Assembly: GCA_003427395.1 (NCBI GenBank)
Contig: BFEA01000023.1
Location: 982,040-1,046,039 of the forward strand
From: Chara braunii
Lineage: Eukaryota > Plantae > Charophyceae
Direction: 5' to 3'
Length of the DNA stretch: 64,000 nucleotides
Shown: in pieces, positions 2,268-47,566 of the stretch
Numbering within the stretch: the first letter of the stretch is position 1
How the letters are laid out: each line of letters starts with the position of its first letter
Made by a program: the position numbers and the translations under genes
Notes under the pieces: model-generated
The model's database searches: none
What the model saw: only the letters and a program-made list of their open reading frames with translations
What the model was told of the DNA's origin: nothing

Positions 2268-4282
2268 TGTGACGCTCAACCCCACGCGCTGTGTTGTTTT
2301 CCGATTGGAGTATTTTGGTTTGCGGAAAGGCTCAGGAAGAACAACAAAGATAAGGTGTGCCAAGGATTTTTAGGAAAATTGAGTGTGGGGGCACAGACAG
2401 AACTGAGATCCCCTGTCTTGGTCCGACTTTAGTAAGAAAGGATCTGTTGCCGCACGGGTTGAAGAAAAAGGCGTGCGCGGGGAATCCAAAAAGTGGAGTT
2501 GTACTTCCTAGCGGGCCATTGCCCTTCGTTTCGAATTAAAGGGGGATGGTACACATGTAGTATCCCGTTTTCGGATGAGGTCCCGTCGACGTTCACTACA
2601 CAACTATGAGTCCAACGTGGAGGGTCTCAATCGAGTGACTCTCTCCTAGTGTTCATCCTCGCCACGTGTGCGGTAATGGAAGCCCTTGGCTTTGTAACGC
2701 TCGGTGCGGCGATAGTCGCTGCACATAGTGCTAGGCCAATGAGGCGCTACTGCTGATCAGGGGATGACGATCAACTCGTTAAACGACAACAACAACGAAT
2801 AAGGCGGAAAGTGCGTATCGATGATGATGAATACCGCACCGTCGAATCCGGAGCACTGGGTCTCGGGTGGGAAGTAATAACGCCCGCCGACCTCGGCGAC
2901 GACTTCTCGTACGTCCCACTCAGATACACGTGTCCTCTCCTCGTTGTACGGGAAGGGGCGAGGTGGGGGCACATGAAGTCAGCACCCAGTCGGATTGGGG
3001 CTGTCAGTCCACATGGAAACAAGGGCAGAGCGCACGATTAATCATACATCATTCATTCAACACCTAATTCAATCCCATTTCATCTCATCAATCAATCAAT
3101 ATCCCTGTCATGCTGACATAGGTTCTCGGACACAATCCACTTCATGCATATATCAAGTGAGAGGAGAAAAATCAACATAACCCACTAATTATAGTATACA
3201 CGTAGCAGAACGAAGGTGTGGGGGAGAAGAGGTGTAGATCAGAGGAGGGGAGAAAGCAGAAGATAATTACACAAGAAAGTCCGACGATCTTGACGAGAAA
3301 TTTTGGCTCAAATGTCGGGTGAACGGAATTCACGCTCAAAAACTTATACCTTGAGACAAAAGAGGCGCATCCACCATAAAATTCCACCATGGCCCCAGAC
3401 CATACACCCACTCAACCTTCGATCCGAACCTCACACCGGCACCAACGATCCCAGCCGTCGCGCGCTACTCCCACTATAGCGATCGTCATCCCGCCGACTT
3501 AGTCTCTGCACGGTCTTGCCCGCATCTCAAGGTCCGTCGGGCAGTCCGGCGCACAACCGAGAAGACTACAGTCAACCCGTCAGGACTTTTCGACTTGCAC
3601 CTTCACACGTACCACCTAACCACTGCCTCCCATAAGCTGGCTGGTGAGTTGAGAGATAACTTTTCGGTAGCGATTGTGGAATTTATAGTTGCGGAAAAGG
3701 AGGTAGATGCCAGGAAGGGTTAGGACTGAGGTAGGGAGAGGTAGGGGAAGGTTCGGGGATAATCGCCCGACGAAAGCCATGTCGATCCTTCGAATCCCAG
3801 TTGTAGCCAATCATTATCACCGCGTAACAGAAATTTCCTTCTTACACGGCGCTTGTCTTTGGCTAGAGGGGAGGAGGCGGAAATCGACAGGGTATTCCGA
3901 CGCAAGGATTAGAGCGGGAAGGAGAAGGGCGCGAAGGATAGCGCGATACTGAATTAAAATTCAGACGATGAAGGGAAAAAAAAGGCGTACGAGGCAAGGC
4001 AGAGATGGAAAACGGCTACAAAGAGAGAAGGGACGTGAGCGCGAAGAAGAGAGTGTCGAAGGTAGCGAGGGAAATGGAGAGAGAGGGGGGGGTTGTACCG
4101 ACACGAAAGCAAAAAAAGGGGCACCGAAACAGTTACAGCTCATTCATAATCCTACGCTAATTCAAAATTGAAAAACATCAGGTGTGTGCGTTGAGTGAAC
4201 GCGGGAAAAAAAATCCTACGCCTATTCAGATTCACACAAGAATCCCCATAAATGGCGCAGGTCGGGAAGCTGGCGCGTTACA
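2268..4282 (-). mobile_element. LTR A (subfamily 1); both termini present, no TSD; decayed embedded ORF about 2500-3014
   Basis: Termini tgtgacgctca...gcgcgttaca; colinear with 12702-15371 and 21702-24305; minus-strand CTATAAATTCC near 3680. Confidence 0.85.
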
Positions 4283-6076
4283 TATGTGACGCTTAGGGCG
4301 TTCCAAAATTATGTGATCTCCTGATTGCATGCATGAAAACTAGTTTACATGGTGGAGGGGGAAGAAAGGGGGCGAGGGGATGAAGAGGAACCGAGCCTAT
4401 CAAGATGAACAAAATCTTGTATTAGCACTAGATCGGGCCAGAGTCCATGTTGACGCCAACTTCAATTTCATTGTCTTCGCGAATCTGCTGGCTCGTTCTT
4501 TCAGGGTCTACCATCCAGCCCTGTCATGTGCAACTCCCTGCCTCTTTGATTGGCGGAGGTCGTCCAGGTGACACCATCATGGTCGGCCGATCTTGCCTGC
4601 TCCTGCTCAATCACTGAAAGTCCGCTCGGCGGTAACCGACGTGGAGAGGGTTGTGGAGTGGTCTAGGCCATTCAGCTGCGAGTGAAGGGAAGTAGTCGGA
4701 TGCTTCGTCACTGAGATCGACAAACTGGACGATTCGGTGCACTTGAGGGAATCGATGGTTGGGTCGGGAGAGGGAGAGGAGGTAGTCTGGAGACAGGGTA
4801 GGAATAGTGTGGTGTGAGGTGAAATTGAGAGAAGAACATAGCTTGGCCCAGCTATGGGCGCGAGATTCCCGTTACACGGGGCACCTACGCACAATGCTGG
4901 AAGCGCGAGCCAAAATGAAAACGAAACGGTGCCGGGGCGGCTCGGCAAAACTTGGCGCACAGGGGCTATCCCGGCTCCGCATCAATAGCTGGGCCAAGTA
5001 CTGGTGGTTAAAAAAAAGAAAAAGGAAAAAAGGTACCAGACGTGGGATCCCTAGTTTTCACGTTTTTGGTTTTCTGGACCATTCCGTCTGCACAGGGACC
5101 ACGCTGAAGAGCCCTCTCGATTGACCTTTCCATCAATTAGGGGCCCCCACGGCTCACCAAACGCTCCAGATGAGAACGAATCTTTCGCGGCAGCGCGGAA
5201 AGATTCAGTGTGGATTTGGTGAGTGGAGTGAGTAGGGGCGCTCCTGAAATTTTCTGCTTATAATGCGAAAATTATGCGCGGAAGTTCCCGGAACACAACA
5301 CACCCTGATAATGAATGCATACCAGCTATCTTTCCCGTCCGGTACAGGCATTATCAGGGTGCGTTCACTGCGTTGTGCTCGGCGGAAGCGGGGAATATCC
5401 CGACCCAAAGTCTGGTTCCGCGGGGCCATCTCTCCACCCCTCGTTCAGCTCGCTCCCCCCGCTCCTTTTCTTCCAATGGCAAGAGGTGTCTTCCGGCTAC
5501 TCGTAGGGCGACAAGCAACGGACGCAACAGGCGGTCCCTTAAAAAAACTCATATAGCTAGCTGGTCGTGGGGAGTACGCAGTTCATCGACAGCTCCGGCC
5601 TCTGGGCGCATTTGCGACGTCCATCGCCGAGTTCCTCTGAGAACTTCCAATTCTGTGCACATTGGCGGTGTCCATCGCTGAGTTACTCTAAGAATATCAG
5701 TTGGCGCCGGGGTTTTCTCGTGGACTGTGCTGCGCTGGCAGGCCATTGCAGGAGAGGGGCATCTTGGCATTCCTCCGTTCGATCAGATGAGACGTCAAGT
5801 GGTGTGCCTACGATTGTCCTAAGGAGGGCGGTGCCAGGTCTTGGGAGGCAGAAGCACTCGACAACGGCTGACTTGTAGGTTAAGGAAGGGATGTGCTGGC
5901 CGTTTCTAATTAGTCGACGAGCTCCAGGCTTGCAGGTCGACGGCTGCACATCGTGACGGTCCTGGTGCCGGAAGCTCTCCTGTAGGGGCTCCTGCAGGTA
6001 TCGGGCTCCCGCTGCTTGCTCTAGTTGTGTACAGCCCAAGGCCTTGGAGCACCTAAGTGAGGCGAGGACGAGGACA

Positions 6077-8797: not shown

Positions 8798-9238
8798 NNN
8801 NNNNNNNNNNNNNNNNNNNNNNNNNNNNNNNNNNNNNNNNNNNNNNNNNNNNNNNNNNNNNNNNNNNNNNNNNNNNNNNNNNNNNNNNNNNNNNNNNNNN
8901 NNNNNNNNNNNNNNNNNNNNNNNNNNNNNNNNNNNNNNNNNNNNNNNNNNNNNNNNNNNNNNNNNNNNNNNNNNNNNNNNNNNNNNNNNNNNNNNNNNNN
9001 NNNNNNNNNNNNNNNNNNNNNNNNNNNNNNNNNNNNNNNNNNNNNNNNNNNNNNNNNNNNNNNNNNNNNNNNNNNNNNNNNNNNNNNNNNNNNNNNNNNN
9101 NNNNNNNNNNNNNNNNNNNNNNNNNNNNNNNNNNNNNNNNNNNNNNNNNNNNNNNNNNNNNNNNNNNNNNNNNNNNNNNNNNNNNNNNNNNNNNNNNNNN
9201 NNNNNNNNNNNNNNNNNNNNNNNNNNNNNNNNNNNNNN
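8798..9238. other. Assembly gap (N run) next to (CA)n
   Basis: N bases. Confidence 1.
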
Positions 9239-10898: not shown

Positions 10899-10995
<97 letters not shown>

Positions 10996-12621: not shown

Positions 12622-15600
12622 TGTGACACCCAAAACCTCACGCCCAGCGCGACTTCCTGATCAGAGTGGGATGTGGGCCTGGAAGTGCGAAAAGGGGTGT
12701 GTGCGACGCGCAACCTCATGCCCTGTGCTGTCTTTTGTTCGGAGTGTGAGACGTGTGGAAAGAGGCCCAGAAAAACAGCAAGATGGGGTGTGCCAAGGAT
12801 TTTTGGAAATTGAGTGTGGGGACACAGATGGAACTGAAATCCCCTGTGTAGGTCCGATGAAGCAAGTCGATTAATTTCGCGCGTCGCGGAATGCGCGCGC
12901 GGACATGGCACGAAAACAGAAAGATCCAAATTCAATCCAAAAAGTATTGTCGTGCCTCCCACCGGGCAACAGCTGGTCGTTTAGAACAGAAAGGCTTTGG
13001 CACACTCCGCGTGTCCCGTTTTCGTATCAAATCTCGTCGTCGTTCCATGGTCAGTTCTGAGTCCGACGTGGATGGCCTCAGCCGCGTGGCTCTTTCTTTA
13101 TGCTCTTCTTCACTCCGCACACGGTAGTGGAAACCCCTGGACTCGTAGCGCTCAAAACGCTGACATTCGGTGCACAGAGTGCGCGGCCAGTGGGGTTCTA
13201 CTGCCGTCCACGGAATGACGATCAACTCGTTAAATGGTAACAATACGGAGTAAGGTGGGAAGTGTGTGTCGATAATAACAAACCCGACTTCTACGAACCC
13301 AGATCAGCGGTTGGCCGAAGGGAAGTAATATTGCCCGCCGATTTGTGCAATGGCTTCTCGTACGTCCCACTCACATACACGTGTCCTTTCCTCACAGTAA
13401 GGAAAATGTCGCGTTGGGATGGGAGATACGGGAGGCTAGCGCCCAATCGAAGGGTACTTGTCAGTCCACATGTCAATGAATCACAAAATATCCTGAGACG
13501 TCATTAAGAACAAAAGCGATTCGCGCGTCCCCCAATCAATCTTTTTGACACAAGAGAGAGAGCAAACACAGACCAGCTTGATCATATATATGACTAAGGG
13601 ACCGATTCGTGACTCAGTTCAACACAACGTTGGCGCCTTGTTTCTCAAGGCCGCCTCGTGGCTCGGCTGCTGATGTCGTGCAGCATAAGGCAGATGGCAT
13701 GCGCAGTGCAAACAGAGCTACAGATCTAAACACTTGCATTCTCGAACAAAATCCCGACGACAATCGTCTAATCAACACGAAAAGAGTCACACGTTTCCCT
13801 ACATGCATTTACTGTGAAAGGTGCAAAAATGAGCCATGCATAGGAAAAGATGGATCGCATCGCACAATAGACATGCATCCACCATTCACAAGACAAGAAG
13901 ATAGAGTCCTTGCGTAGGAGGATTACCCAGGAAACTAATGAAAGAGTTCCGGAAGAAGTTCTTTCACACAAAAAGAGGACGCCGACTCATTCCCATTCAA
14001 GAGAGGGACAATCATTCAGACGCATCATCAGTCAAAAAGAGAGAAAGGGAGAGAGAGAGAGTCGAGGGAAAGAGAGTCAAAATAGAAGATGACAAAAGTT
14101 CGGCGTCACCGCTGTACACTCACGCCAAGGATACCAATCCGCAACAAAGGCGCATTCGTCGTTAATTCCAATATGACCCCGGACCAATCAACTCAACTTC
14201 GAACATCGATCCTCATACCAGCACCGATGATCCCGGACGTCGCGTGCTAACTCCCACCACTACGATGGTCACCCCGCTGTCGTAAACTCGACATGGTTCG
14301 CCCGGATCCCACAGTCCGTCGTGGCAATCAAGAGCGCAACTGGCCAGCCTATCGTCAGCCCGACAGGACTTTCTGACTCGCTTTAAAACAGTCTGCCTAG
14401 CCACTGCTTCCCGGAAGCTGGCTTGGGAGTCGAGAACGTAAGAGAGATATGCGGACGCACTTGCGGGTTTTATGGTTGCGACAGGGGAGATAGAAGGGGG
14501 AGAAGGAGACAGGAAAGCTGAGGTGTAAGTGGAGAAGCAGGAGGAGAGAGTGCTCTACGAACGTCATGCTGATCCCTCGGAACTCAAGGTTCAACCAATC
14601 AGATTCGTCGCGTGATAGGAAGGTCCTATCGATCCACGCACCTGATTGGCGAGCGGGAGTTATCGGGGGATCGACTGGGCGTCGTACGCCAGACGTAGAG
14701 GGTGAGAAAAGAAAAGGCGCGAGAGGTGGCGCAAGACGGGTCCAAGATTCAGATGATAAAGAAAGGAAAATAGGCGCGTGAAAGCAAGGCGAGAGAGAGA
14801 GAGAGGGAGAAGGAAAAACAGTTACGGGAAGAGAGAAAAAGGAGGGAGAAGGGAAGGGAGGCGCGGGAGGGAGCGATGCCGGGGACAGAGAGGAGGAAGC
14901 TTTTGCCTGCACGGCGCCGTCAACAAAAAAAAAAGAAAAAGGCACCGAAACAGTTACAGCTTGCTTTTATCCTAATTCAAAATTGAAATCACCATATCCG
15001 CGCGCGGAAAAGCGACGGGGGAAAAGAAAATCCTACGCCTATTCGTATTCACGCAAAATTCCGAGAGTTTTCCCCGATGCGCCCAAAAACATTCACACAC
15101 ACAAAAAAGACACGTTGAAGTTCCGCTTATCCCGAAATTCCCAACTACCGAGCCCGATTCCCAGTGCGCTTGCTGAGGCGCATGTAAATTCCCATGTATT
15201 TCCTGATTTTACAAGAAGAAAAACAGAACTCAGTAGTTGAAAAAGCTCTCAAAAAGGAAAATGTGGCACCCGAAAGCAAGAACTTAAAACAGGGTTTTTC
15301 TGGGGTTGGTATGATACAAGCAAAAGAAAGGGTACGAAAGATGGCACGGGGTCGGGAAGTGGTTCGTCACATGTGCCAAGGATTTTTGGGGAAAGTGGGG
15401 GTGGAGTCCCAAGTTAGAACTGAGATCTCCTGTGGCAAAGTTTCAGGGGCATAGATGCAATTCGGCTAAGGAGGCGAGTTACTTCCAGTCTGAGGTGTTC
15501 GGGTCCTGCAGCATAAGGCAGATGGAATACACGGTGCATTCAAGGCCGTCTGATTCCTCTGTTTTGGTGGCGGCGGTTCGGGGAGGGGCTCGCCCGGGAT

Positions 15601-18377: not shown

Positions 18378-18450
<73 letters not shown>
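18020..18450. repeat. (CA)n/(CT)n microsatellites interleaved with a duplicated unit of about 85 bp (18105-18190, 18279-18365)
   Basis: caacctcctga...gtgaaagtcc.acgaaa.agtctggca...tgtatggc.aatatg occurs twice. Confidence 0.8.
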
Positions 18451-18452
<2 letters not shown>

Positions 18453-30525: not shown

Positions 30526-30581
<56 letters not shown>

Positions 30582-30582
30582 N

Positions 30583-30675
<93 letters not shown>

Positions 30676-32841: not shown

Positions 32842-32929
<88 letters not shown>

Positions 32930-35530
32930 NCCTCCCTCCCTCCCTCCCTCCCTCCCTCCCTCGGAGCCTTCAAGGGCGAATTTAGGAACTGTAATGACCC
33001 ACCAGAACACAGACTGAGAACACTGCTGATTTCTGAGCTCTGCCGCTGGAATGGATTCCTTGCTGAGATTCCTGCGTTCTTCTGAGTTTTCTAAGTATGT
33101 GTGTGTGTGCGTGTTTGATGGTCTGCATGATCGTCTGAGTGCTGCTTGGCCTGAGTGTGTGTGTGACCAGCAGGGGTACTTGCTTGTTTGAAGGCCCGTA
33201 GGGCCAGTACTTACCTGTGGCGGTGACATTGAGGGTTGAAGGGGGGGGGAAACACTCATGTGGTGGGCAGGAGGCCTGCGACACTCAGGGCAGCGGAAAA
33301 ACACTCAAGTAGCAGGTAGGCCTGTACCACACCAAGCAGAAGTAGATGTGCCGGGTACTTGAGGCCGAGCAGAAGAAGACAAAGTTGGCATTTTTAGAGA
33401 CCCATTAGTTGTAGGCTAGGTCTAGGCGGGTACCAGTCCTACCAGTCTGAGTCTAGGGCCTGTACGGGCAATATCAGAGTCTGCAATGATGTTTCCCTCC
33501 GAAAGGGAGGAGGTACTGCTTGCTTGGGAGGCTGAGCGGCCTGGACGTCACCGCCCAAGATGCTAGTGGGCCGCTATATCCTCCGACTGAGCCAAGAGCT
33601 CAGCCTCATTCTTCGGTGTGCAAGTTTGGGGACACACTGCTTGGAGCGTTGGCTGGAGGAGTGCTGGGCACTTCAGCGCTGCTGGGAGCGAGAGCTCCCA
33701 CCTCGGCTATGGTGGATCTCTGGCGGTAGAAGGAGGGAGAGGAGTACTGAGGAGGAGAGTGGCGAGGTGGCTACCTGGGTATGGTGGACACCATCTTCAT
33801 CACCTTGTTAGGCGCTACATCTGGAAGGCCCCAGTTGGGGTAGTGCCACACCGAGGAAGCTCGAGGCAGAGTCAGGCATGGCGGCCTGATGAGCAGCAAC
33901 ATAGGTGCTTTCAAGTGCTTTGTGTTGTCCTTTGGACAAGAGGGCCGAGCTCTTAGTAGTCCGCCATAGCCTTGGCCTACATGAAGAGGAAGAGGAAGGG
34001 TGGTCATGGCTATGGTGGTCCTCACGTTGTACTGGCACTGCCTGCAGTAGAAGAGGGATTCGGATATTGATTGGAGTTCGTCGGGCCAGTGCCGGGAAAG
34101 TCCTGCGCCGACGATTAAGTGACCGGACCCTAGCGAGCGCGAGAAATAACGGTTGCCATAGCTTCTTTCTTGTTCTGCTATGTGCACTAGGAATTTTGGC
34201 GTGATTAGCGTGCGGGAGTTTTCAATTTTGAAATTCGAACTAATGTCGAGCCCCTGGAGGCTCTTGGAATTGTTTTTGGAATTTTCTCTTGCAATTACGA
34301 TTTAGATTAGGAATTTAGGCACCTTGCAATTTGGCGGCACGGGGCTTCTTGCTTGCATGCACCGTGCCCCAACAGGGTCTGGGCTCTGATTCTGTCCGCG
34401 CTTTAATCCTGTGTGTAACTGTAGTTTTTGGCGGGCGCAATCGCAACTGTAATCTTCTTGTTCTTGATGGCTTTCGTATTATTTTTCTTTCCCGCCTCGT
34501 CTTCGCTTACACGCTCTTCCTCTATTCTAAGTGGTTCCCACGGTTGCATGTCCGGATCGATGTGCGGAGAGCGGCTTCGTCCCCCACGCTGCGGCTTGGA
34601 CGTACAGATGTAGGCACTCCCTCTTTGTCTCTTTCTCATCACTCGGTGCTAATCCCGTATCCCTCGCGCAAGCATGCACGCTATAAATTTTGCAAGCGTG
34701 ATTAGTTCGCTCTCTAAGAACCTTGAGGTGAGCGCGATCAGTGAGGGTCGGCTAACGAGCAAGTTTTGGAAGGTGAGCAAGCATGAGAGTTGGGCAATCC
34801 GACGAGCTGGTGCTGAGTGCGCGGGGTTGACGTGTGGTCGCGATGGACTGCGGCACGTGGGCAAACCTGGCTTGCACACTCAGGCCAAGCGGGGTGACGA
34901 CTCTGTGTAGCTTGGGAGATGCCGGGCAACAGACCGCCCGCATTGAGAGAAGAAAGAAAGAGAGTGAGAGAGAGCGAGACGGGGATATGGTGGAACAGTG
35001 TCTTCTTCTCCCAACCTTCTATGTAAAGTTTTGATTCCAACGTTGGTCGATGTTGTTGCCGCACTTTCGGATTTCTTGTGTAAATCATCTCGGACTATCT
35101 GCTTTGGGTGTACGTATGCATGAGGATGAATGAACGCGCGCCCCTCTTTACTTTTTGTTGCCCCCAATCTCAAATCTTCTGTCCAACCACTTGTTTTGAG
35201 TCAGGGTGAACGGGTTATTTGGATGCCCAAAACTAACTCTGCCCTCTTTTCGGTGTGAGCATGAATGTACTGATAGCCAGTGATTGGTTCTGTCTGAGAT
35301 TTGGATAACAGTTGCATAGAAGGTCTGCAAGCATATAGGACAAACCGACACGCAAGTAAATCATTGGTAACCCACTCACACGTGGTCTTTGATCCGATCG
35401 ACCGGCGCATGCGCACGCATGCGTCAAACAGCCGCCCACAGAGGTGACCTGCAGCCTACACATGCACGTGTAAGAGCCGACCCGATCCCACTGGTCGAAG
35501 ATGCCTGCGCCGAATTCCGCTAAATAGGAT

Positions 35531-36111
35531 ATGGCGATTGAAACTCCCTTTTGGATTACCGACCGTGAGAGCCTGAGAGATCCGGAATACCGAGCGTATT
35601 GGGAAAGGGAACAAGTCAGATGGCAACAAGCTAGACGCAACGAAACTCGCGGAATCCTGAGTACCCCTGCCGAACTGGAAATGAGCAACTGTACAGAGGC
35701 AATTTCTAGTTGGCCATTAATCGAGACTTGCGGATCCTGGATTATCCCGATAACCGAAGCCAGCATTACCTTCTAACCCCAGGCTTCGTGGCCATCACCA
35801 CTTGTTTCCCTCCCTATTATGTTGTCCTCCCGTATCACCAACTACTCGCCGTCCCTTGGGAGTCCATAGCCCAGTTCTGGCCCCGACCGTCGTGCTTAGA
35901 GTGTCAGCAGCACGACGGGCACTGTCCGGCGGGGATCACTCGACGAACCCGTCCCGAAACGAAACAACGGGAGCACAGCTCATCCTCCTCAGCCTCGGAG
36001 ACCTGCGCCGGTCGACAGCGGTACGAGCATTCCCACTGGGACGCCCTCGGCGCCCCACCCGAACGCCATATGCGGATCAGGCCGCAAGATCGGTCATCAC
36101 CCCAACTCTGA
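35531..36111 (+). pseudogene. LTR-embedded ORF of LTR D (one frameshift near 35710)
   Basis: MAIETPFWITDRESLRDPEYRAYW... then LLTPGFVAITTCFPPYYVVLPYHQLLAVPWESIAQFWPRPSCLEC. Confidence 0.6.
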
Positions 36112-36275
36112 ACCGAAAGAGACACTTGCACGTCTATCCCTGGAACTTGACACAGGAGATTTCAGTTCCGACCTGGAACTCCACCCCCACTTTCCTAAAA
36201 TCCTTGGCACACCCCTTTTTGCACTTCCAGGCCCACCAACACTCGGAAAGCAGGAAGTCGCGCTGGGTGTGAGTT

Positions 36276-36288
36276 TGGTATCGGAGCC
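36276..36288 (+). promoter_or_regulatory. Primer-binding site, tRNA-iMet type
   Basis: TGGTATCGGAGCC, 12/13 to TGGTATCAGAGCC, between LTR and gag. Confidence 0.85.
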
Positions 36289-36452
36289 GACAAGTGTCAA
36301 GACCCGGGATTGGCAAAGGGCTCGGCTCTTTCAAACTCAACCGACCTGGCGATTCCTAAAAGGGGACGGTCTGCGACTCCGTGCCAAGGAACACGTCGAC
36401 ACGCGAACCTATCGTAACAAGAATCCGGTTTGCAGGCAGATCAACTGACAAC

Positions 36453-37512
36453 ATGAATGTCAATCAGGCCAACGCTAATCAAGCGCAGGCTCACCAGGCA
36501 TAGGGAGGGGCAGGTGGTGGCCCAGTACTCGCCCCCCAGCCCGCACCTCAGCCTGCACGTGTTCGTGCTCCGTCAGCCCGTCAAATTTGTACTTGTTTGA
36601 CCCGGCGCACCACCTGGCAGGAGCCTGGCTGGCCACGCTCCGAGCACATCAGTACGATAACGATGAGGCAAGGATTAACTTCCCCTCGAATCTATCGCGA
36701 AATACCGCAGCCGATTCTATCGATTATTCGTAAAATCCCAGAGGGATGGAAAGGTAGGTACAAACTCCTTCATAGATGGACTTCAAAGTAGAGCTATACA
36801 AGCCAAGTTGCGAAAACAGTTCTCCCCCATTACCTTCACCATGACACAGATCATGGATGCAGTCGAGGAAATGGAGCGAAAATTCGCTGCCAGTTTCCTC
36901 GAAGGAGAAGATCACGCTAAAGAGGGGGATTCAACGGAACTTACCAGAGCAAGGATGGAATTAGCAGCACTCCAGCACAAGCTTGAAAACATGGGCTTTG
37001 TAACAGGCCCCGTCACCTATTTGGAACAGGTGGCGACCCAACGACCTTCTCCCGGCCAAGCACCAAGATCATAGGTGGCAAGAACACATGCTCAGACCCC
37101 TGCGCCGGCGGGTAAGCCAGACGATTTAAATGGAATTCTAGACCTTACACGTACCTTAGTTAATCTTATGCAGGAAAGCAAGAAGGAGCAGCACAAGTAT
37201 AATGCCCGCATGGAGTCACTGATGTGCTCCATGCGCCCCATTAAAAATGGCATTAATGTTCGCACCACCCTGTTCCCTGCCGGAGATCCTGTTGCAGCAG
37301 CAGCAGTAGGAGCGGGTGTAGGTACGGCCCCCAGAACGGACACGTGTTACGCGTGTCACCTGCCTAGACACATGGCAAGGGACTGCCCCGAGATGCAAGT
37401 ACAAATAGGAGCAGCCCCAGCCGCGGCGGCACCCCTGGCTAATGGACCAGGCCGAGGAGGAACGATGGTGGAAGAGACAAACGGAGCGATGGCCACTAAG
37501 CCGTGGAACTAA
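36453..37512 (+). pseudogene. gag: gag remnant with CCHC zinc knuckle
   Basis: CYACHLPRHMARDC (CX2CX4HX4C); several stops. Confidence 0.75.
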
Positions 37513-37911
37513 TCCCCCTTGATCAGTTTATATCGTTAGGATATCCAGTACTGGGTATGATTGGGGCGATTCGACCGGCAGACGAGGAACGAGAAGTCCC
37601 GGAATGGAGACCATCCTCTGGTGAGATGGAATCCGGCGGCCCTACGTTCATCATTGGAAAGATCGATGTACTCGACATCGTTCGAGCGCTAGATCACCAC
37701 ATCCCACTCCCAGTTGGACATCCGCTATCCATATCGAAATAAGCTAACGATCGTATGCTCCAGCATTGCAAGACTAACTGAAAACGATTCGCACTTGCCA
37801 AGCTGGCAGCAGTCAAAGGGAAATCCCCCGTTAAAATAACGAAACCAGACGTACCCGGACCCTCGGAACCCGTGCGCCTGGGGATTATACAGAAAAGCGA
37901 TCACTTTCTGC

Positions 37912-38396
37912 CTATGAAACACCCGCGGACGCGTCCGCGGGGTCAAGCTCGGAGGGCGGACGTGATCACGGGCGCCGCAGCTCCGGCCGCGGTTGGGTGC
38001 GGCCGCAACTTTGACGAATTTTTTGTGACCTTAAAAATTTATCAAAAAAAAAAACAAAAAAATATGGAGTTGTAGATTTTTTGGAGATCTAAATTGCGCA
38101 ATTTTTTATTTTATTTTTTTACTTTGTGTTCGAATTTTAACAATTCAAAAACTAATTTTTCTTAGGCAAAAGCTGTTTGATTGTTTTTTTCCAAAAAACA
38201 AACATGAAATATATGTGATTTTTTATTTTAAATTCAGTAACGTTTTTGGATATGACCACAAGGCAAAAGTTGTTCAGTATAGGTTTCTGCATAACGTTTT
38301 TTTTTCCAGAATGTTTTGATTTTTTTTTTTTTTTTTTTTCATGGCCGCGGACTGTGGACACGTCCGCGGATGGCCGCCGCCAAGGGAGATTCGTAG
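37912..38396. mobile_element. MITE with CTAYGAA termini and 8-bp TSD CTTTCTGC (hAT-like TSD length)
   Basis: ctttctgc|ctatgaaac...gattcgtag|ctttctgc. Related left ends ctatgaatcc at 44827 and 61458. Confidence 0.85.
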
Positions 38397-38442
38397 CTTT
38401 CTGCGCATTTAAACCATTCCGTGGAAATCCGCGGAATGTGAC

Positions 38443-39490
38443 GTGGAAATTTGGGGAGTACCGTATAGCGCGATCATCGATTTCGGAGCGGCCATATTGG
38501 CCATATCCTTGGGAGTAGTAGAGAGGGCGGGACGAAGGAAGCATCTGATCCCGCTCACCGATGTAGACTGCCTGATCTTGGCAGACGAGGAAAAGATCCG
38601 AGCGGTCGGGAGAATGACAAATGTCGCGTTTAGACTAGAGAAAGTTCACGCCTTGGGAGACGTAGTGGTGCTCCGTGTAACCTCGTATGATGTCCTTCTT
38701 GGGCTACCCGCTCTAAACGCCCTCCAGGCCAGCCTGGATTTCGAGCAATGGGTAGTAGTTCTCAAGAACACGGGTGGCAAGCCATATACAATTCCTGTGC
38801 GTCTCACCCTCCGCACAACGGTTAACTCGACACAAGAGATCCAGCTAGGGGTAGTCGGGCCAATCCGAATGACCACATGGGAAAGACAGATGGATGATTT
38901 AGAGACATTCAGCGAGGAACAGATGTCGTTGCTTTCCGAAGATTCAGAGAGTGACGACGAAGCCGACCCCGTGATCCAAGAACCGACACGTAGAGTTACT
39001 AGTTACACGGTTCGACCGAAAAGGACGAAAGCTTTCGTACTTACCGAAGAGAAAACCTGGCGGACTCGGGCCCTGATCATGGGGGAACCGTTGGTACAGG
39101 TGTCGAGACTGCCCGATTCTTCGGAACCCCCTCGGACCCTATACGAGGGCGCCACCCCCCTGCTTCCACGATATGTAGACAAACGATCCTTTTGTGGCGT
39201 CACGGACTTCCTCCCCGATCGCTTCTTACCATGGAAAAGGAGATATGATTGTTACGTCTGGGAGCACAAACACAGGTTCCGGAACCCCCTAGGTGCCCCG
39301 AAGCCTCGCTATTCGAAATCGGAATAATAGTTGTTGAGAAATCAGTAGACCCTCGAGACATTGCGGATGGGATAACCCCTGAAGAAAATGTGGCCATCAG
39401 GGAAGGGGAAGCTCAGATGGTGGCCACTGTGTTGTCCTAGCGGTTGGATAATTCTTTCATCTCTTCCCTGCCGCCCCGAGATACGAAAAC
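38443..39490 (+). pseudogene. Aspartic protease and linker of pol
   Basis: AIIDFGA (degenerate D-S/T-G) and YDVLLGLPAL retropepsin motifs. Confidence 0.75.
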
Positions 39491-39494
39491 AATA

Positions 39495-39836
39495 TCATCA
39501 GCTTCAATAGCAGCAGTATTGTCATCATTATCATTATCACCATGCTCATCATCATCATCAGTAACGAGATTATTCATCACAGTCGCCATTATCAACAACA
39601 TCATCATCACCATCATCTTCATGTTCAACATCAAGGTGGAAAGAACGTGGCAGCGGGAGTGCTGGGCAACAGAAGGACAGAGAGGAGCAACAACATCAGT
39701 ATCAGTATTATCAGCAGCAGTAGCAGCATTTCTGACATCACCGTCATCATTATGCGAATCTTTATTGGTGAGTTATCATCATCTTCATATCATCAGCTTC
39801 ATCATCATCATCATAATCAGTATCATCATCATTATT

Positions 39837-39871
<35 letters not shown>

Positions 39872-39966
39872 TATCTTCATCATCATCGTCAGCATAACTA
39901 TCATACCATCATCATTATCATCATCAATATGAGCATCTTCATTGGTGCGTCATCATCATATTCATC

Positions 39967-40033
<67 letters not shown>

Positions 40034-40126
40034 GTAGTAGCAGCAGCATTATTGATATCATCATAATCATCATCATGAGTATCATCATTGGTTAATCTTC
40101 ATCATCATCATCATCTTTATCATCAA

Positions 40127-40168
<42 letters not shown>

Positions 40169-40948
40169 ATTTATCGATAACCTTTTGTTATCAATAGAAT
40201 TTGCTCTTCAAGGCTTCGTGTCGCTTTTCGTATCATCATCATCATTCCCGTTATCACTATCTATCCTTCACCTCCAACAAAATCCAAGAGGAATGTCAAT
40301 TTGGTGAGGGGGTAGGGGAGAGCCCTGCCCCGCAGGGGTTTCATTAGGAGGGAGGTGGAATCTTAGAGGGGGTCTGGGCAGATTGTGAGGAATACTCCTT
40401 TATGGGGCTGGGCATCAAATCCCAGCGGGGGCAGATTAGAGTAAAGGGATAGATAGGGTAATGGAGAGAATGGAGGTGTGATGAAATTCTCAGCTATCAT
40501 CATCTAATTATTGTTATAACTTATATTAAGTTTTTTTGTGTTCTGAAATTCTGGCTGCATCTCGTATTCTTCCACATCCAGGATATAGGTCTTCAGATAT
40601 GGTTGAACGTGGACTGATATCTTCTGAGTTGCTCTATTATGTGCCCTTGGTTTCCGATGCCAGAACGACGCTGGCCGGAGCTCGGGCGTTGCCCTGTAAC
40701 CTGTAAATAGCAGGAGTGTGAGGCCTTGTAGAGAGATCTGGGGTTTGCTGAGGGTGGAAGGCCTTCCAGTGGTGAGATGGGGGGGGCTGAAAGAAGGCGA
40801 GAAGAGATCAGCTATGGTTGATGTTGGTCAGGTTGTTTCTGTCTCTGTAGTATAGTGTCCTGGTACAGGGACGGCTAGGAGTTGTACTGGGATTTGGAGC
40901 CCCGAATAGCTGATATAGCATCATCATTATCATCAACATCAACATCAA

Positions 40949-40989
<41 letters not shown>

Positions 40990-41662
40990 CACCATTAGTT
41001 TCATCATCTGATTATTGTTATATTAAGTTTTTTGGTGTTCTGAAGTTTTGGCAGCATATAACATTCTTCCACATTCGGGATATAGGACTTCAAAGATGGT
41101 TGAACCTGGACTGATTTCAACTGAGTTGCTATGTTCTGTGCCCTTGGTTTACCGATGCCAGAACGACGCTGGCCGGAGCTGGGGCGTTGCCCTGTAACCT
41201 GTTAATAGCAGGAGCTTGAGGCCTTGTAGAGAGATCTGGGGTTTGCTGAGGGTGGAAGGCAGTCTAGTGGTGAACCAGGGGGGGCTGCAATGAAGTGAGA
41301 AGAGATCAGTTATGGTTGACAATTAGTTAGGTGGTTTTGTCTTTGAGGTACAGTTTCCTGGTATAGGGAGGGTTGGGAGTTGTTATAGGATTAGGAGGCC
41401 AGAATAGCTGATATAGCATATTTTTCTTTAATTTTTTATATTTTTAAATCATCATTCTCATTAGCATCATTAATCAGTGTCATTAGTATCATCATGGTCA
41501 TCATTAGCGGTTTCCGTATGTCCATTCTGGGCAGACTGTGAGGACCCCGGCCTCATCTTATTATTGGTAATATTAGCCTTGGGCACTGGGCCCTTTTAAA
41601 AAAAAAAAAAAAANNNNNNNNNNNNNNNNNGCCCTTTTAAAAAAAAAAAAAAAAAAAAAAAA
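39495..41662 (+). mobile_element. Poly(A)-tailed retroposed insertion, (CAT)n-rich, 12-bp TSD ACGAAAACAATA
   Basis: TSD at 39483-39494 and 41663-41674; poly(A) at the 3' end; internal duplication of about 420 bp (40497-40920, 41000-41420); N gap 41614-41630. Confidence 0.8.
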
Positions 41663-41674
41663 ACGAAAACAATA

Positions 41675-43115
41675 CGCACTAAGCACGTGACAGTTGTCAT
41701 TCACGGACAACCCTATAAATTACACGTACCGGAATGCGTGCCTGACGAAACCTACCAATTGATTGCAGATATCATAACCGAGTATTATGACGCTATTAGC
41801 ATCGATGATGCGGATATCGGATTATCTTTGATAATCCAACACAAGATCCAGACCGGCGACCACCTGCTGATCCATTACAAACCCTATCGTTACTCACTCA
41901 CGGAACGAAAGGCAGCACTCGAACGCATCCGTGAGTTCGAGGCCAACGGTTGGATAGAGCCCGCTACAGGTCCTTGGTCTTTCCCCGTATCGATTATCGA
42001 AAGTTGAATGATATCACGATCAAAGACGTCTTAGACGTGTACCCCCTCCCTGGGATTGACGACTTGCTAGATGCGATTGGATGTGTTAATTATTTTAGTA
42101 AATTTGATATTTGACACGGGTTCCATCATATCCTCGTAAGGAAGGAGGATCGACCGAAGACGACATTTGTACTATTTGAGGGCACATGGCAATGAATCTG
42201 TTGTCCTATGGGGATATGCAATGCACCGGCGACCTTTCAGAGGGCGATGAATGTCACATTTCAGAACTTCGTGAACAACACTCGGTTAACTGAGGGAATG
42301 ATCAATTTTTGCGTTATTGTGTACATGGACGACATTATGGTGTATTCTGAGTCTTCCATGGACACGCGCAACACATTGAATGGACACTTGGGGCGCTCCA
42401 AGATGCTGGTTTGAAGATTGCGTTGAAGAAGAGCGAATTTTTCCTATCTGAGATCTCGTTCTAGGGTACATAAAAACCCAAGGAGGCTTGAGACCGGATT
42501 CGAGGAAAGTTGAGGCGGTTTGGGAAGCACCCACGCCCACGTCATTGACACAAGTCCGAGCCTTTTTGGGACTGGCCTCGTATTACCGACGGTTTATCAA
42601 GGGATTTGTGGGAATCGCTCGGCCTCTGACGAACCTCCTACGGAAGGACCAACTGCTGAACTGGGACCCGGAGTGTGAACGGGTCTTTTCCACTCTCAAC
42701 GAGGCCCTGGCCTCCGTGCCTATTTTAATCCGGCCCGATCCCGAGCGACAGTTCCTACTCATTACTGACTGACAGACTGAAGCCATCTCCGCTATCCTGG
42801 CTCAGAAAGGGAAGGACGGTCGGGAACACGTGGTTGAGTATGCTTCGTGGGCGGTGCCGGACGAGAGAAAGAACGACTCAGTGCCTCAGGGGGAATGCTA
42901 CGCTGTGGTCTGGGGAATTCAACACTTCCACCCGTATCTCTAAGGACAGAAGTTCCTCCTCGTAACGGACCACGAGCCCTTGCTGGCACTCAAGAAGCTG
43001 ACAAACTACACATGAATGATTGGGCGATGGGCAGTAACTTGAGTAAGGCTGCAAGAGTATGATTTCGACATCGTTCATCGGAAGACAGAGAGGCACGGAA
43101 ACGCAGACAGATTGA
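41675..43115 (+). pseudogene. pol: Reverse transcriptase and RNase H of pol (frameshifted)
   Basis: KPYRYS, GWIEPATGPWSFPV, PMGICNAPATFQRAMN, VYMDDI, VRAFLGLASYYRRFIKGF, FLLVTDHEPL. Confidence 0.92.
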
Positions 43116-43322
43116 CATGACTACACAGGCTAGGCAAGGTGCCATGAGGCGAGGAGATCACTTCGTGGAAGGAACCAGAGCAGCCCAAGGGACCCGGGTA
43201 CGGTCAGGTGAGGGTCCTCCCTCGACAGGCGAAGAAGTGACGTGTGTCCCCATGGCGGCCCAAGGGAACGAAAATGTTGAAGGCGTTCCTCATCCTCTCT
43301 ATTTTCCTTACCCGATCGTTTT

Positions 43323-44315
43323 TGTCTTCTCTGCGAATCTATCTCGCGAGTCCATTTCATTTCGATTGAGCGACAACGCGAGGGTTATGTTGAATGGGTA
43401 GAATGTGCTAAGTGCGTGGCAAGAGCCCACGGGTCATGTGTTCAGTATAGGAACCCCCAGAAGCAGTGGCTCTGCCATCTGTGCCGTACCGATAAGATTC
43501 CGACGGAGGCTCGATTCCTGGAAGCGACGTTGAAAAGTCTAGAAAAGACACTACGGTTTAGACAGGCGGAATTATGGACAGATGTCGTCCTAATAGCCAC
43601 AATTGTCTGGAATTCTCTCCGAGAGTTTTCTAAGGAGGATCGAAGGCGGGCCAATGAGAGGGCGCGAGACTATAGGTGGAACGGAGAACGGTTAGAGAAA
43701 AGGAAAACGGATGGAAGCGGAATCTGGATGGTGGTACCGCATTCATTCGTGAGGTATGACTGGGTACGGGCTGCGTGTAAGGAGACGGTCGCACATTTTG
43801 CTGTCAGAATTACCGAGGCAGCCATTGATAAAAATGAGTGTCAGTGGTGCTGGTCCAATATCCGAGACGACGTTAAATTTATAGTTAAAAATGATCTCGT
43901 ATGCGCTGCTGACGAAGCGCCGATTCAACCGCCTAGGTCGAAAGTGCCGACTATAGTCCAACGGCCATTCCAGAGGGTTAGCATGGACACGACAGATATC
44001 GTCGTACCCCTTGAAACGAATAGTTGTGAGTATTCAATTCTTTTGGTATTCGTTGACCACTTTTCGAAGTGTATCGAGGCATACCTCTGTCGGACAAGAC
44101 AGTCGGCGGAAATAGCGCGATATGCCAACCGTTTCCTCGGGATGCACCAGGATACCGAGGAAATCCTTAGACAATGGAGCGGAATTCCAAGGCGAAGTCC
44201 TGAGGAACCTGGTCGTGCATGGGGTGTCTATTCGTAATACCGCCCCCCATATGTCTCAATCGAACAGCCTCGTAGAAAACGTCAATCGAGTAATTAAAAC
44301 AGCACTCCGACGGAA
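43323..44315 (+). pseudogene. PHD finger followed by DDE (rve) integrase
   Basis: CLLC-x23-CAKC-x4-H-x2-C-x9-WLCHLC in frame with PFQRVSMD, LVFVDHFSK; after a frameshift DNGAEF...SQSNSLVENVNRVIK. Confidence 0.85.
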
Positions 44316-44399
44316 GAGTAGGTCGGTATGTCCCATACCTCGTGGGAGCAGATCAGTCTGCATTCGTACGGAGCAGATCTATTTTTTATAATACAGTCA

Positions 44400-44826
44400 C
44401 GACAATAAAGTCTATTGAGATAATCGCAAAGGAGAGCGGCTCCTATCAGTGCTTCATCTAGATCTAGAAAAAGAATATAACAGGGTCAATTGGACATTTA
44501 TGCTCACCGCTTTACGACGAATGGGATTTCGTGATTCCTTCTGCAGATGGGGAACGACACTTTATACCCAGTCCATGACAGCCATAATAGTAAATGGGTT
44601 CTTCTCTGAGCCCTTCCGCCTAACGCGGTCGCTGCGGCAAGGTTGCCCACTGGCTCCCTTAATATTCGTTCTGCAGTTAGAGGTTATCATGTGTAACATC
44701 GGTTGTCGACCGGAGATCGTGGGACTGGAAGTAGCCCAGACGCAATGTAAAGTCAAGTCCCTTGCCGACGATCTGTTTGCCATCTACAAGAATTCAGAAT
44801 CTGCCTCTATTAGCGAGATCGCCCGA
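44400..44826 (+). mobile_element. L1/Tx1-type LINE RT fragment
   Basis: DLEKEYNRVNW...LRQGCPLAPLIF...LADDLF. Confidence 0.85.
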
Positions 44827-44856
44827 CTATGAATCCTGGAACCGCGCCACGTGTCG

Positions 44857-44869
44857 GGCTCCGATACCA
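44857..44869 (-). promoter_or_regulatory. Primer-binding site, tRNA-iMet type, of LTR E
   Basis: Reverse complement TGGTATCGGAGCC directly abuts LTR E. Confidence 0.85.
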
Positions 44870-46200
44870 ACCTCACGCCCGGCGCGACTTCCTGATCGGA
44901 GTAGGATGTGGGCCTGGAAGTGCGAAAAGGTGTGTGCCAAGGATTTTCGGGAAAGTGGGTGTGGAGTCCTAGGTCGGAACTAAGATCTCTTGTGGCAAAG
45001 TTTCAGGGGCATAGATGCAATAGTGCTAAAGGGGGCGAGTTACTTTCGGTCTGATGGCGGTCGAGGTCGTGCAGCATAAGGCAAATGGCATGCGTGGTGC
45101 ATTCAAGGTCGTCTCATCCGTCTATTTTGGTGGCGGCGGTTCAGGGAAAGACCCACCCGGGATGGTTGTGATTCCGATGAGTCGGACCTTCGGGTGCAGA
45201 CACATGGCGTCTGTCGTCGTGCGTTCTGGTTAGGCCTCGTAGTTTCAGAGGCTCGTCGGTTGCTGCGTCGCAAGCAATTTTTGCAAGGCGTGCGGGGCCA
45301 ATACGGGGCGATGGAATTCCACGGAACCACTGTGAGTTGGTGGTCTGGGAGGAGGAGACGGAAGGGAGGGAAATTGGTAGTGATAACAACGAAGTCGGGG
45401 GATATGGAGTATTGCGTGTTATCCCTAGTTGGGTAATCGGGGCACCTCGGATCCCTGGTTACGACACAGTGAAACTCCCTAGGACACAATCAATTCTTGG
45501 TTAGGCAGGGGAATTCCGGGTATCTTTGCCTAATACATTCTCTCACCCAAGGGTCGAAGTACTCTGAGTCCCAGCAGCTCGACATCTTATCACGGCGTAA
45601 TGGAAGCCTTCCGCACACGTCCAACCGGCAAGGGGATTTTTCCGATGTGATATTGAAAATTCCTATCCGTTTAGGTGCGTGGGGGAAGGAAAATTCCAGC
45701 CTACCCGATACCGGAGATGTCAAGCTTGTCAATGGTCGCGAATCGGCATGCGTGGATACGTGTGGCTGCGCAGATCGAATCGCGCTTACACGTATCCCCG
45801 CGAGGCATTCGCCTATTGCAAAATCGCCATGCGCCGTAAACAACTACCCAATCACATAATCACTCCGTGATCTCGCAAGCAATCATTCCCAAGCATGCAA
45901 GGTGTTATCACACATCAGACGTTAACATTTCTACTATGCCTTAATAACGTATCAAAATGGCAAGCAAAGACGATGACCAGTCAGGAAAAACAACAACTAT
46001 ATCATTCATTCATCCATTTATTTGACAAAACACACAATAAACGAGAACAAGATCAATCACAAAACAAGTGGGGGCTGAAGCCAAGCCAAGATTCCGAAAA
46101 CAAAAGAAAACGGGCGAGTCACCCGGAGCCAAGATCAAAATTTATATACAAAAGTAAGGAGGGCGATAAGACAAAGAAAATTGCAAATCCACGTCCATCA

Positions 46201-46298
<98 letters not shown>

Positions 46299-47566
46299 AT
46301 GCGGACAGTCCGTCGTCACGCACCAACCCACGAAGTCGTCACCCCGCTTAGTCCTCCTGCACCCGTCAGGTTCGCCCGCGCGCTACACTCCGTCGTAGCC
46401 CCACGCGTCAACCTCGCGCAATCGGAACCAGCTCGTCGGGTCGCCCGACTCCCACTTCAACTCACCTCTTACTTCGCTCGTGAGCCGACCCTCACTGATC
46501 GCGCTACCCCGAGCTTCCAACAACTGGTAAAGAGAGCTATCTAATCGCGCAACCAGAATTTATAGCGTGCGTGCATGCGCGAAGAACACAGAATTGCAAG
46601 GACTTAGAAGGGAGATTAGGAGAGGGAGCGCCTACGTTCTGCATGGCCAGACCACGGCGTGGGGGACGTAGCCACTCTCCACACATCAATCCGAGCATGC
46701 AGGCCGCGGGATAACTAGGCACAACAAAAGGGAAAGAGAGAGTCGGAAGACGAAGCTCAAGAAGAAAGATACAGTTACAATGGCGCCCGCCAAAAAATTA
46801 CAGTTACTTGCAAGATGAAGGGCGCCAACTAATCAGAGCTCCGTTGCAGCCACAAAAAGAAGCACGCGAGAGAGACAACGTGCGGCAAAAGAAATCCCGA
46901 ATTCCTAAATTCCTAGCCAATGCAAAAAGAAGCACATATTCCGAAAAGAAAATCCGAAGTTTCGAAAGCCATCAAGGCTCCGACAAGATTCGAAAAAGAA
47001 ATTCAAAAGGAACGAAGTAAAATTCCCATGCGATCTCCGTGCCTAAAACCCGACAACAAAAAAATTACCATGCGATCTCCGTGCCTAAAACCCGACAACA
47101 AAACAAGAAAGAAGCGACGTCAAGCATTATTATTCGCGCCTTTGTCGGCGCGACAGCCACTCAATCGGCCATCTCGGGACTTGCGCGGCCCTGAACCTAG
47201 CCATCCGAAAAGAAACGACGCAAAAAGGCGAAGAAGCGAGGACACCGATGCAATTTCCCTTTGATCCCGATCTCCCGTAATTGGCCCAACCTTCCCATCT
47301 TAGGACTCCTAACAGCCATTTCGTCAAAACGGACATATTATATTTTTTGAACGAAATCAAAACTGACTTTTTTTGCCAAAATCCGGTCGGAAGTTTTTGC
47401 TCCTGGGGGTCTGGCGTTCCAAAAAAATGCCGGACCCCCTACATGTATCTGGTATATGGTTGAGACCAGATACAAAAAAAAAGAAAAATGTCCCTTTTGA
47501 CGAAATGGCTGTTCCCTCATTGTCATTGCGCAGAAGATCGCGCGGAACAGAAATTGGTTCGTCAGA
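44870..47566 (-). mobile_element. 5' LTR E (subfamily 2); internal region lost just after the PBS; embedded ORF about 45103-45585 with one stop
   Basis: Colinear with LTR C; outer end ggttcgtcaga. Confidence 0.88.
47311..47513. mobile_element. MITE of the AAC...GTT family, 4-bp TSD (T/C)CCT
   Basis: aacagccatttcgtcaaaa...ttttgacgaaatggctgtt. Empty site taggacccctcattg in LTR C near 17573. Confidence 0.85.

Follow-up and report, generated by a model that had tools for sequence, protein, structure and literature searches.

Two strand transfers make both ends of a long terminal repeat (LTR) retrotransposon during standard replication, so both LTRs must end alike. How, then, can an element carry at its integrated right end a sequence that is missing wherever its LTR adjoins the primer binding site (PBS)? 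The question is raised by a 64-kb stretch of the Chara braunii genome (contig BFEA01000023.1, assembly GCA_003427395.1; hereafter "the window"), a transposable-element graveyard with about 50% G+C and no long open reading frames (ORFs), which holds copies of a Ty3/gypsy group. By comparing the window with itself and by BLAST with two LTR queries, we resolved seven LTR copies, A to G, belonging to two related subfamilies. Ten further C. braunii loci (L001 to L010), chosen around integrase-type gene models, served as the comparison set; each holds an element of this group.

An earlier sequence-only reading of the window had proposed that the last 11 nucleotides of the LTR are split off from the copy beside the PBS, and the observations on which it was built were reproduced here. 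The two LTRs that touch a PBS, D and E, end in GTGAGTT and GTGAGGT, respectively, with no terminal CA, and run directly into TGGTATCGGAGCC, which we take to belong to initiator tRNA-Met, going by the plant PBS TGGTATCAGAGC. The integrated right ends of A, B, C, and F carry an additional 11-mer: GGGGT is followed by TGAGCGTCACA in A, GAGGT by TGCGCGTCGCA in B and by TGCGCGTCACA in F, and in C a TT separates GAGGT from TGGGTGTCACA. The 11-mer of G, described earlier as fused to a point inside the LTR, borders a 109-bp deletion of the 3' part of the LTR, which in an alignment with A, B, F, and L004 stops exactly at the 11-mer. Upstream of A lies a further copy, TAAGCGTCACA, followed by TA and the LTR start TGTAAC (4295-4277, minus strand), and its similarity to the right end of A ceases after 11 nt. 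B and C have clean 4-bp target-site duplications (TSDs), CACA and ATAC.

The split arrangement extends to complete elements with TSDs and to both subfamilies. In all ten loci the 5' LTR ends in GGGCGTGAGGT, or a one-base variant, and passes directly into TGGTATCGGAGCC; counting D and E, 12 of 12 LTR ends adjoining a PBS stop at GAGGT or a one-base variant of it, as had been predicted, with none contrary. By comparison, 13 of 13 integrated right ends (with G additional) bear the extra 11-mer, TG-N-GCGTCACA, before the flank begins. The further prediction that 3' LTRs are preceded by the 11-mer and TA was borne out at every 3' LTR with internal sequence (12/12), each of which follows GGAACCCCC, the 11-mer, and TA. 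In the ten elements and a second element at L004, this internal junction reads TTGGAACCCCC-TG(G/C)GCGTCACA-TA-TGTGACGAACC and lies 7.7 to 12.3 kb downstream of the PBS. No same-family copy in the window or the ten loci has the 11-mer in front of a PBS, and the 12 PBS ends without it against the 13 ends with it, none showing both, give a Fisher's exact P of ~2e-7. For the exact 13-nt PBS, chance would give about 0.002 occurrences in 64 kb; the window has two.

The 11-mer and the left end TGTGACG form a 7-bp inverted repeat, from which it follows that the 11-mer holds the true right-hand integrase end. Elements begin with TGTGACG and end with CGTCACA, and four of them are complete with matching 4-bp TSDs (L001, ACGC; L003, GTGT; L004, AGGA; L010, AGCC), while L002 and L005 to L009 have the same layout with or without a TSD. 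At the internal junction, the 11-mer, the TA, and the LTR start together make a 16-bp perfect palindrome, CGTCACA-TA-TGTGACG, which is nearly invariant in the 12 junctions, as are the TA and the 6-mers flanking it. The full order is TSD, TGTGACG...GAGGT, PBS, gag, protease (PR), reverse transcriptase (RT), RNase H, integrase (IN), ORF, GGAACCCCC, 11-mer, TA, TGTGACG...GAGGT, 11-mer, TSD. The 11-mer is encoded once, internally, outside the repeat that reverse transcription makes beside the PBS, and this layout is a feature of the whole family, a very abundant C. braunii Ty3/gypsy group. The PBS junction had previously been known in subfamily 2 only; that caveat is lifted by L009, a subfamily-1 element of the same layout whose LTR ends in CAGCACAGGGCGTGAGAT before the PBS and whose internal junction reads TGCGCGTCACA-TA. 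Besides this junction, the present analysis adds a test of indels at the joint, the exclusion of fold-back copying, and the recurrence of the GGAACCCCC motif.

LTR pairs inside one element are 91 to 96% identical, whereas between elements only the last ~150 nt can be aligned, at 75 to 90% identity; both LTRs of an element therefore come from one replication event. We considered and rejected an origin of the layout from two independent insertions, a one-LTR unit and a solo LTR, because the TA is no TSD and LTRs are more alike within than between elements.

We aligned Logan contigs from two DNA sequencing runs, together with raw reads from two RNA runs, to window positions 44300-46200 at 80% likeness. 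About 7,000 and 6,000 contigs matched in the two DNA runs, stacked on the last ~130 nt of the LTR, where the summed word depth of ~3.7e5 (against ~11 on unique flank) should not be read as a copy number. At 44867, 137 and 148 contigs have loose ends that read GAGGT-TGG plus GCGTCACA and then heterogeneous flanks; at 44869, 49 and 61 contigs read GAGGT-T plus TGGGCGTCACA, with one T extra. Other contigs cross the PBS and then diverge, and the indels listed (threshold 3%) include no insertion of 11 nt where LTR and PBS meet. RNA coverage is low (393 reads in run X15), and both junction types are present in RNA, with 38 X15 reads that leave the LTR end, cross the 11-mer, and continue into flanking sequence.

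Source of the terminal 11-mer and putative start of the plus strand

The tRNA primer fixes the right end of the cDNA at the base adjoining the PBS, which in this family is the T of GAGGT. Two strand transfers cannot add 11 specific bases beyond it, so ordinary reverse transcription cannot make the right end seen in these elements, and an extra joining step is needed. The free third base of the 11-mer agrees between internal and terminal copies, being G/G in L002 to L004, C/C in the minus-strand L004 element and in L009, and A/A in window A. Copying of the right end from the tRNA primer was rejected since the 11-mer departs from the PBS after TGG, as was a role for the 11-mer as a second tRNA binding site, since subfamily 1 has TGC or TGA and hence no CCA complement. 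The idea that GGAACCCCC and the 11-mer form a tRNA-like 3' half was also dropped, as ARAGORN called nothing at these sites. That the 11-mer is a snap-back (hairpin) copy of the palindromic left end, or an untemplated addition, strikes us as very improbable. The last 7 nt of the 11-mer are an inverted repeat of the LTR start, as snap-back would have it, but the match to the reverse complement of the LTR start covers these 7 nt only; the first four bases are TGGG, TGCG, or TGAG, following the element's internal copy, and not the GGTT given by the complement of the LTR start. Untemplated addition is excluded by the covariation of internal and terminal copies. The covariation, together with the failure of fold-back and of tRNA copying, implies that the terminal 11-mer is templated by the element's own internal copy or by the copy of it at the left cDNA end.

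The joint between U5 and the terminal 11-mer is also where copies vary. Extra bases occur there in 4 of 13 right ends (TT in window C and in the minus-strand L004 element, T in L009, A in L010), and these four copies come from unrelated sublineages whose other members have no extra bases. By contrast, none of 24 control joints (12 between LTR and PBS, 12 between GGAACCCCC and 11-mer) has an indel (Fisher, 0.011). The contig classes agree with this variability, about 26% having one extra T, and one end of the deletion in G is the first base of the 11-mer, i.e., the same joint. The 11-mer stays constant while variation falls on the inner side only, as expected where ends are joined imprecisely and selection then keeps the integrase end intact. 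The pattern also resembles retroviral circle junctions, which are typically heterogeneous at the point of ligation, with small insertions and deletions. As far as the sequences can tell, the U5/11-mer joint is most likely re-made in each cycle from the element's internal copy.

No purine tract touches the 3' LTR in any of the 12 cases; the nearest purine-rich block, CAGGAG, lies 25 to 30 nt upstream of the 11-mer. Directly beside the internal 11-mer stands GGAACCCCC, invariant across the 12 junctions, and a matching motif, GGAACCCCCT, occurs twice in the PR-RT linker, in frame as LEPP and with synonymous sites invariant as well. In a comparison of eight copies at 75% identity, the two pol sites keep 11 and 7 invariant bases (codon-position shuffles, P ~5e-4), and the second continues with TGGGCG, as the 3' site does. 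By analogy with central and 3' polypurine tracts (PPTs), we infer that the GGAACCCCC motif marks plus-strand priming, the plus strand beginning with the 11-mer. Between 25 and 45 nt upstream of the internal 11-mer, a small putative hairpin with a purine loop takes in the CAGGAG block; it reads GCAAGC-AGGA-GCTTGC, or GCAATC-AGGA-GATCGC in subfamily 1, and is weakly supported, by one compensatory pair; subfamily 2 has a longer inverted repeat farther upstream.

Possible routes to the integrated right end

These data suggest a replication cycle with one unusual step. Reverse transcription primed at the PBS would leave a right cDNA end stopping at GAGGT, and a plus strand starting at the first base of the 11-mer, after GGAACCCCC, would produce the left cDNA end 11-mer-TA-LTR, so that the cDNA would read (11-mer-TA-LTR)-PBS-...-(11-mer-TA-LTR). 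The U5 end would next be joined to the 11-mer of the left end, either by end joining into a 2-LTR-type circle or by a template switch of RT across bridged ends, the latter possibly aided by the TG(G) common to PBS and 11-mer. Cutting after both CAs of the palindrome, the DDE integrase would generate a TG...CA molecule with 2-nt 5' overhangs and recessed CA-3'OH ends, and this molecule would insert with a 4-bp duplication. The copies are probably products of such retrotransposition, their right end arising by U5-to-11-mer joining followed by integrase cleavage at the palindrome; the plus-strand start, the joining chemistry, and the cleavage itself are what we infer from the layout. A circular or bridged-end intermediate would be the best-fitting mechanism for the sequence features described. 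Of the overall interpretation put forward earlier, the split structure stood, and the circle cut at CA-TA-TG fits the data, with no joined molecule among contigs or reads. This mechanistic reading gains indirect support because indels are confined to the joint, the 11-mers covary, and the 11-mer is not a fold-back product. Purified integrases of prototype foamy virus (PFV) and HIV-1 cut palindromic LTR-LTR junctions in vitro (PMC3185514, PMC2884000).

Several points weigh against this cycle. Because a circle could be cut at the other palindrome, tandem copies (LTR-11-mer-TA-LTR-PBS) and one-LTR copies (LTR-PBS-internal-11-mer, then TSD) are expected, and none occurs in the ~290 kb examined. 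Loose ends past the 11-mer, in DNA and RNA, lead into heterogeneous flanks, not into TA-TGTGAC, and no circular, concatemeric, or bridged molecule was seen among the genomic contigs and sparse RNA reads. RNA coverage is too low to map R, with no transcription start or poly(A) site callable, and all copies seen are degraded. The plus-strand start depends on the analogy drawn above, and the CAGGAG block could be the real primer. A conserved ORF downstream of the integrase has no ligase, nuclease, or recombinase fold recognisable by Pfam or by Foldseek on the predicted model. Retroviral integrases, moreover, use linear DNA in vivo (PMC11054761).

Could the right end be completed with no covalent circle at all? 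The plus-strand 3' end at U5, with one to three tRNA-copied bases (T, TG, or TGG), would then pair in the pre-integration complex with the minus-strand 3' end of the left end that begins with the 11-mer; extension by about a dozen bases would follow, and integrase would trim at the CA as in ordinary 3' processing. We regard this as unlikely, though a serious contender. PBS and 11-mer start with TG(G) in every copy, the class with an extra T would fit one retained tRNA-templated base, the joint of G (CCCC/TG) resembles the border between GGAACCCCC and 11-mer (CCCCC/TG) as a homology-guided switch would give, and circle-derived permuted copies were not found; yet 2 to 3 nt of microhomology is weak, and the TT and A joints are left unexplained. 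Since either route would yield the same U5-11-mer-TA-LTR joint, sequence by itself would fit the two equally well.

It is quite improbable that a read-through transcript ending past the parent's terminal 11-mer passes that 11-mer on to the new copy. RNA reads do cross the LTR end and the 11-mer into flanks (the 38 of X15), although these may be host transcripts crossing solo LTRs; minus strands start at the PBS, as its strong conservation shows, and joint variants are scattered over unrelated sublineages instead of being common to relatives. We know of no reverse-transcription scheme that copies RNA 3' of the R-U5 acceptor. It is scarcely credible, finally, that the family is canonical and that the missing 11-mers of D and E and the one upstream of A are chance deletions, coincidences, or assembly artefacts. 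The window does have gaps, and its copies are all old and degraded, but the layout recurs without exception at 12, 13, and 12 junctions in 11 genomic places on different scaffolds, with TSDs (Fisher, ~2e-7), and hundreds of independent contigs show it, so that the census refutes a canonical layout. The joining of U5 to the left-end 11-mer followed by cleavage at the palindrome remains the reading we prefer.

Copies, coding regions, and other sequences

The positions of all features are collected in Table 1. Of A's element, only ~200 nt of internal sequence survive (4283-4499). Unrelated DNA flanks E on the left, which makes E a true 5' LTR. Recombination between LTRs explains the solo LTRs B and C equally well as direct release would. 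Neither assembly gap affects a junction: the gap at 8798-9238 sits inside an unrelated repeat upstream of the A remnant, and the 17 N at 41614-41630 mark the edge of a low-complexity insert between PR and RT of D. The region 44300-44874, including E's PBS junction, is spanned by independent contigs of public DNA runs with zero differences.

Table 1. Coordinates of LTR copies and associated features (window positions unless a locus is named)
Feature	Position	Strand	Remarks
LTR A, subfamily 1, 3' LTR	2268-4282	minus	
A terminal 11-mer (B2), TGAGCGTCACA	2268..2278	minus	flank comes next
A LTR body	2279..4282	minus	start TGTAAC, body end GTGGGGT
A internal junction	4283..4306	minus	TTGGAACGCCC (GGAACCCCC-type motif), TAAGCGTCACA (B1, 4295-4285), TA (4284-4283); palindrome with LTR start
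A internal 3' remnant	4307..4499	minus	homologous to L004:19088-19261; remaining element absent
LTR C, 3' part, subfamily 2, solo	12622..12701	minus	GAGGT-TT-TGGGTGTCACA; TSD ATAC 12621-12618
LTR B, subfamily 1, solo, nested in C	12702..15371	minus	TGTGACGAACC...GAGGT + TGCGCGTCGCA; TSD CACA (15375-15372, 12701-12698)
LTR C, 5' part, solo, split by B	15372..17631	minus	start TGTGACGAACC at 17631; TSD ATAC 17635-17632
LTR F, subfamily 1	18604..20367	plus	end GAGGT + TGCGCGTCACA (20357-20367); no matching TSD
LTR G, subfamily 1	21702..24305	minus	11-mer 21712-21702 joined to ...GTGTCCCC; no matching TSD
LTR D, subfamily 2, 5' LTR	34067..36275	plus	left side truncated; end GTGAGTT (36269-36275), without 11-mer
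PBS of D, TGGTATCGGAGCC	36276..36288	plus	touches LTR D
D internal region, degraded	36289..44388	plus	gag, PR, RT, RNase H, zinc finger, integrase; truncated after integrase core
PBS of E, TGGTATCGGAGCC	44857..44869	minus	then only ~45 nt of internal sequence
LTR E, subfamily 2, 5' LTR	44870..47566	minus	start TCTGACGAACC, end GTGAGGT (44876-44870), without 11-mer
GGAACCCCCT copies in pol	L004:7549-7561, 7705-7717; window 39121-39133		same sites in L001-L007
Hairpin upstream of GGAACCCCC, putative	L001:13480-13530 and homologous sites; window 4310-4345 (minus)		one compensatory pair
Extra-ORF conserved domain	L003:11764-12297; L004:20482-21012 (minus); L002:12053-12550; homologues		between integrase and internal junction

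The coding capacity of the family is best seen at L004, where Pfam domains occur in the order Retrotrans_gag, RVT_1 (1e-26), RT_RNaseH, Integrase_H2C2, and rve; Pfam also gives a zinc finger between RNase H and Integrase_H2C2. The D region of the window matches these pieces in the same order; a 2.1-kb insert with the 17-N gap (39510-41674) breaks up its pol, low-complexity sequence and tandem repeats filling 39441-41613 up to the gap, and its internal region is cut off by a fragment resembling a long interspersed nuclear element (LINE). An open frame with the LINE-type reverse-transcriptase motif LDLEKEYNRVNW lies at 44419-44829 (plus strand), between D's truncated integrase and E's PBS. For the integrase-bearing ORF at 43281-44234, all 12 protein matches are CBR_g proteins of GCA_003427395.1. 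The scanned ORFs, those in the 2 kb downstream of the integrase among them, gave no tyrosine recombinase match at E values up to 1.

Within the ~2 kb that follow the integrase, both subfamilies carry a conserved ORF of ~350 to 390 aa with a conserved domain of ~150 aa; it is absent from the window, since D is truncated before its position. It matched 156 representative clusters, all seven sampled ones being from C. braunii, and no Pfam family. Its first structural model had a pLDDT of 50 and a second (AlphaFold2, 49-sequence alignment) a pLDDT of 75. We considered it as the joining enzyme and set this aside because the fold comparisons were unconvincing (Foldseek best E, 8e-3; VIA Z no higher than 5.2).

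Three stretches (5413-8768, ~26900-32400, and 49147-55474) were tried as internal regions and rejected; they have no protein similarity to this gypsy pol and are copies of another repeat, with cores 84 to 92% identical. An ORF in G (21830-22357, minus strand) has one database relative only, P0013, a sequence of 173 aa with 71% identity that lies on an NCBI contig of 4 kb, and LTR-borne ORFs were dropped as a handle for gathering LTR copies because of that single match. E contains a (CT)46 run at 46204-46296; long (CT)n/(AG)n runs also occur in the window at 1865-1990, 10899-10952, 18383-18458, 30528-30694, 32844-32965, and 56338-56400, and at positions 994-1057 of the L002 3' LTR, the position being homologous in the subfamily-2 LTRs of E and L002. 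At L005:15957-16040, the 11-mer of the 3' LTR is cut after TGGGCGT, and a second copy of the element's left flank and LTR start follows ~30 nt farther on, pointing to a duplication or rearrangement at this place. ARAGORN called a tRNA-Leu-like sequence inside the integrase region of the L007 element (L007:10784-10869).

Relation to known systems and implications

The Chara split family resembles canonical Ty3/gypsy elements in having gag followed by PR, RT, RNase H, and integrase, an integrase with H2C2 and rve domains, a tRNA-type PBS touching the 5' LTR, TG...CA direct LTRs, and a short TSD. It departs from them in that the 5' LTR stops 11 nt short and has no terminal CA, no PPT stands directly 5' of the 3' LTR, the two LTRs differ in extent, and a single internal copy encodes the right end, making a palindrome with the left end to which it is fused. 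The same genome holds a canonical neighbour family: at L009 21363-21342 (minus strand), an LTR ending in CCTCACGTGCGTCACA (with terminal GCGTCACA) is followed by T and the PBS TGGTATCGGAGCA, and a related LTR lies at L003:1338-1570. Its terminal octamer and PBS are the same as in the split family, and its CCTCACG is the reverse complement of the CGTGAGG beside the split family's joint. If its left cDNA end has an extra A, its joined ends would read GTCACA-T/A-TGTGAC, which is the internal palindrome of the split family. We speculate that the split layout may have arisen from a captured LTR-LTR junction.

Circular intermediates of IS3/IS911-type copy-out-paste-in elements have ends abutted a few base pairs apart, which the DDE transposase cleaves for insertion. 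We liken the Chara palindrome to them as a cleavage substrate made of abutted ends, although those are DNA transposons with no reverse transcription. Among retroelements, PAT, TOC, Ngaro, and VIPER have split direct repeats of the form A1-ORFs-B1-A2-B2, the internal B1-A2 border representing joined ends (PMC4157794). The Chara order of LTR, internal region, 11-mer, TA, LTR, and 11-mer is an A1-B1-A2-B2 arrangement of this kind, as the sequence-only reading had noted for a DDE-integrase gypsy element without a PPT at the border; unlike those elements, it has a DDE integrase, a tRNA PBS, 4-bp TSDs, and a B repeat of only 11 nt, with no tyrosine recombinase in the scanned ORFs. In 2-LTR circles of PFV and HIV-1, too, abutted integrase ends form a perfect palindrome, CA-NN-TG. 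There the palindrome is the ligated joint and the circles are by-products, whereas in Chara it is carried in the genome, 11 nt away from the joint of U5 and 11-mer; the Chara spacer is 2 nt rather than 4, and cutting both strands would leave standard 2-nt overhangs. For retroviruses, integration through the circle junction was at one time proposed and later abandoned in favor of linear DNA; in the Panganiban-Temin internal att experiment, spleen necrosis virus was claimed to integrate by way of an LTR-LTR junction inserted within it (PMC11054761). More tentatively, we suggest that a retroviral-type DDE integrase lineage may have become dependent on cDNA whose ends are joined, in a circle or by bridging, integrating it by cleavage at a palindromic attachment site encoded in the genome. 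If true, this would be a natural version of that abandoned pathway, in which LTR elements converge on the split-repeat strategy of tyrosine-recombinase retroelements. Full-text literature searches found no published description of this split layout.

A hugely successful family, whose LTR tail is matched by thousands of contigs, breaks the equal-ends rule in every copy. With the rule broken, at least one further step must take place, cDNA end joining followed by internal cleavage by integrase. Indels specific to the joint provide a simple mark in the sequence by which this model can be tested across the genome. If confirmed, the model would mean that retroviral-type integrases use abutted-end substrates in vivo; it would offer a natural setting in which to study how cDNA is circularised or its ends are bridged, and it would explain the mis-annotation of much of the Chara genome by LTR finders that expect a PPT and TG...CA symmetry beside the PBS.

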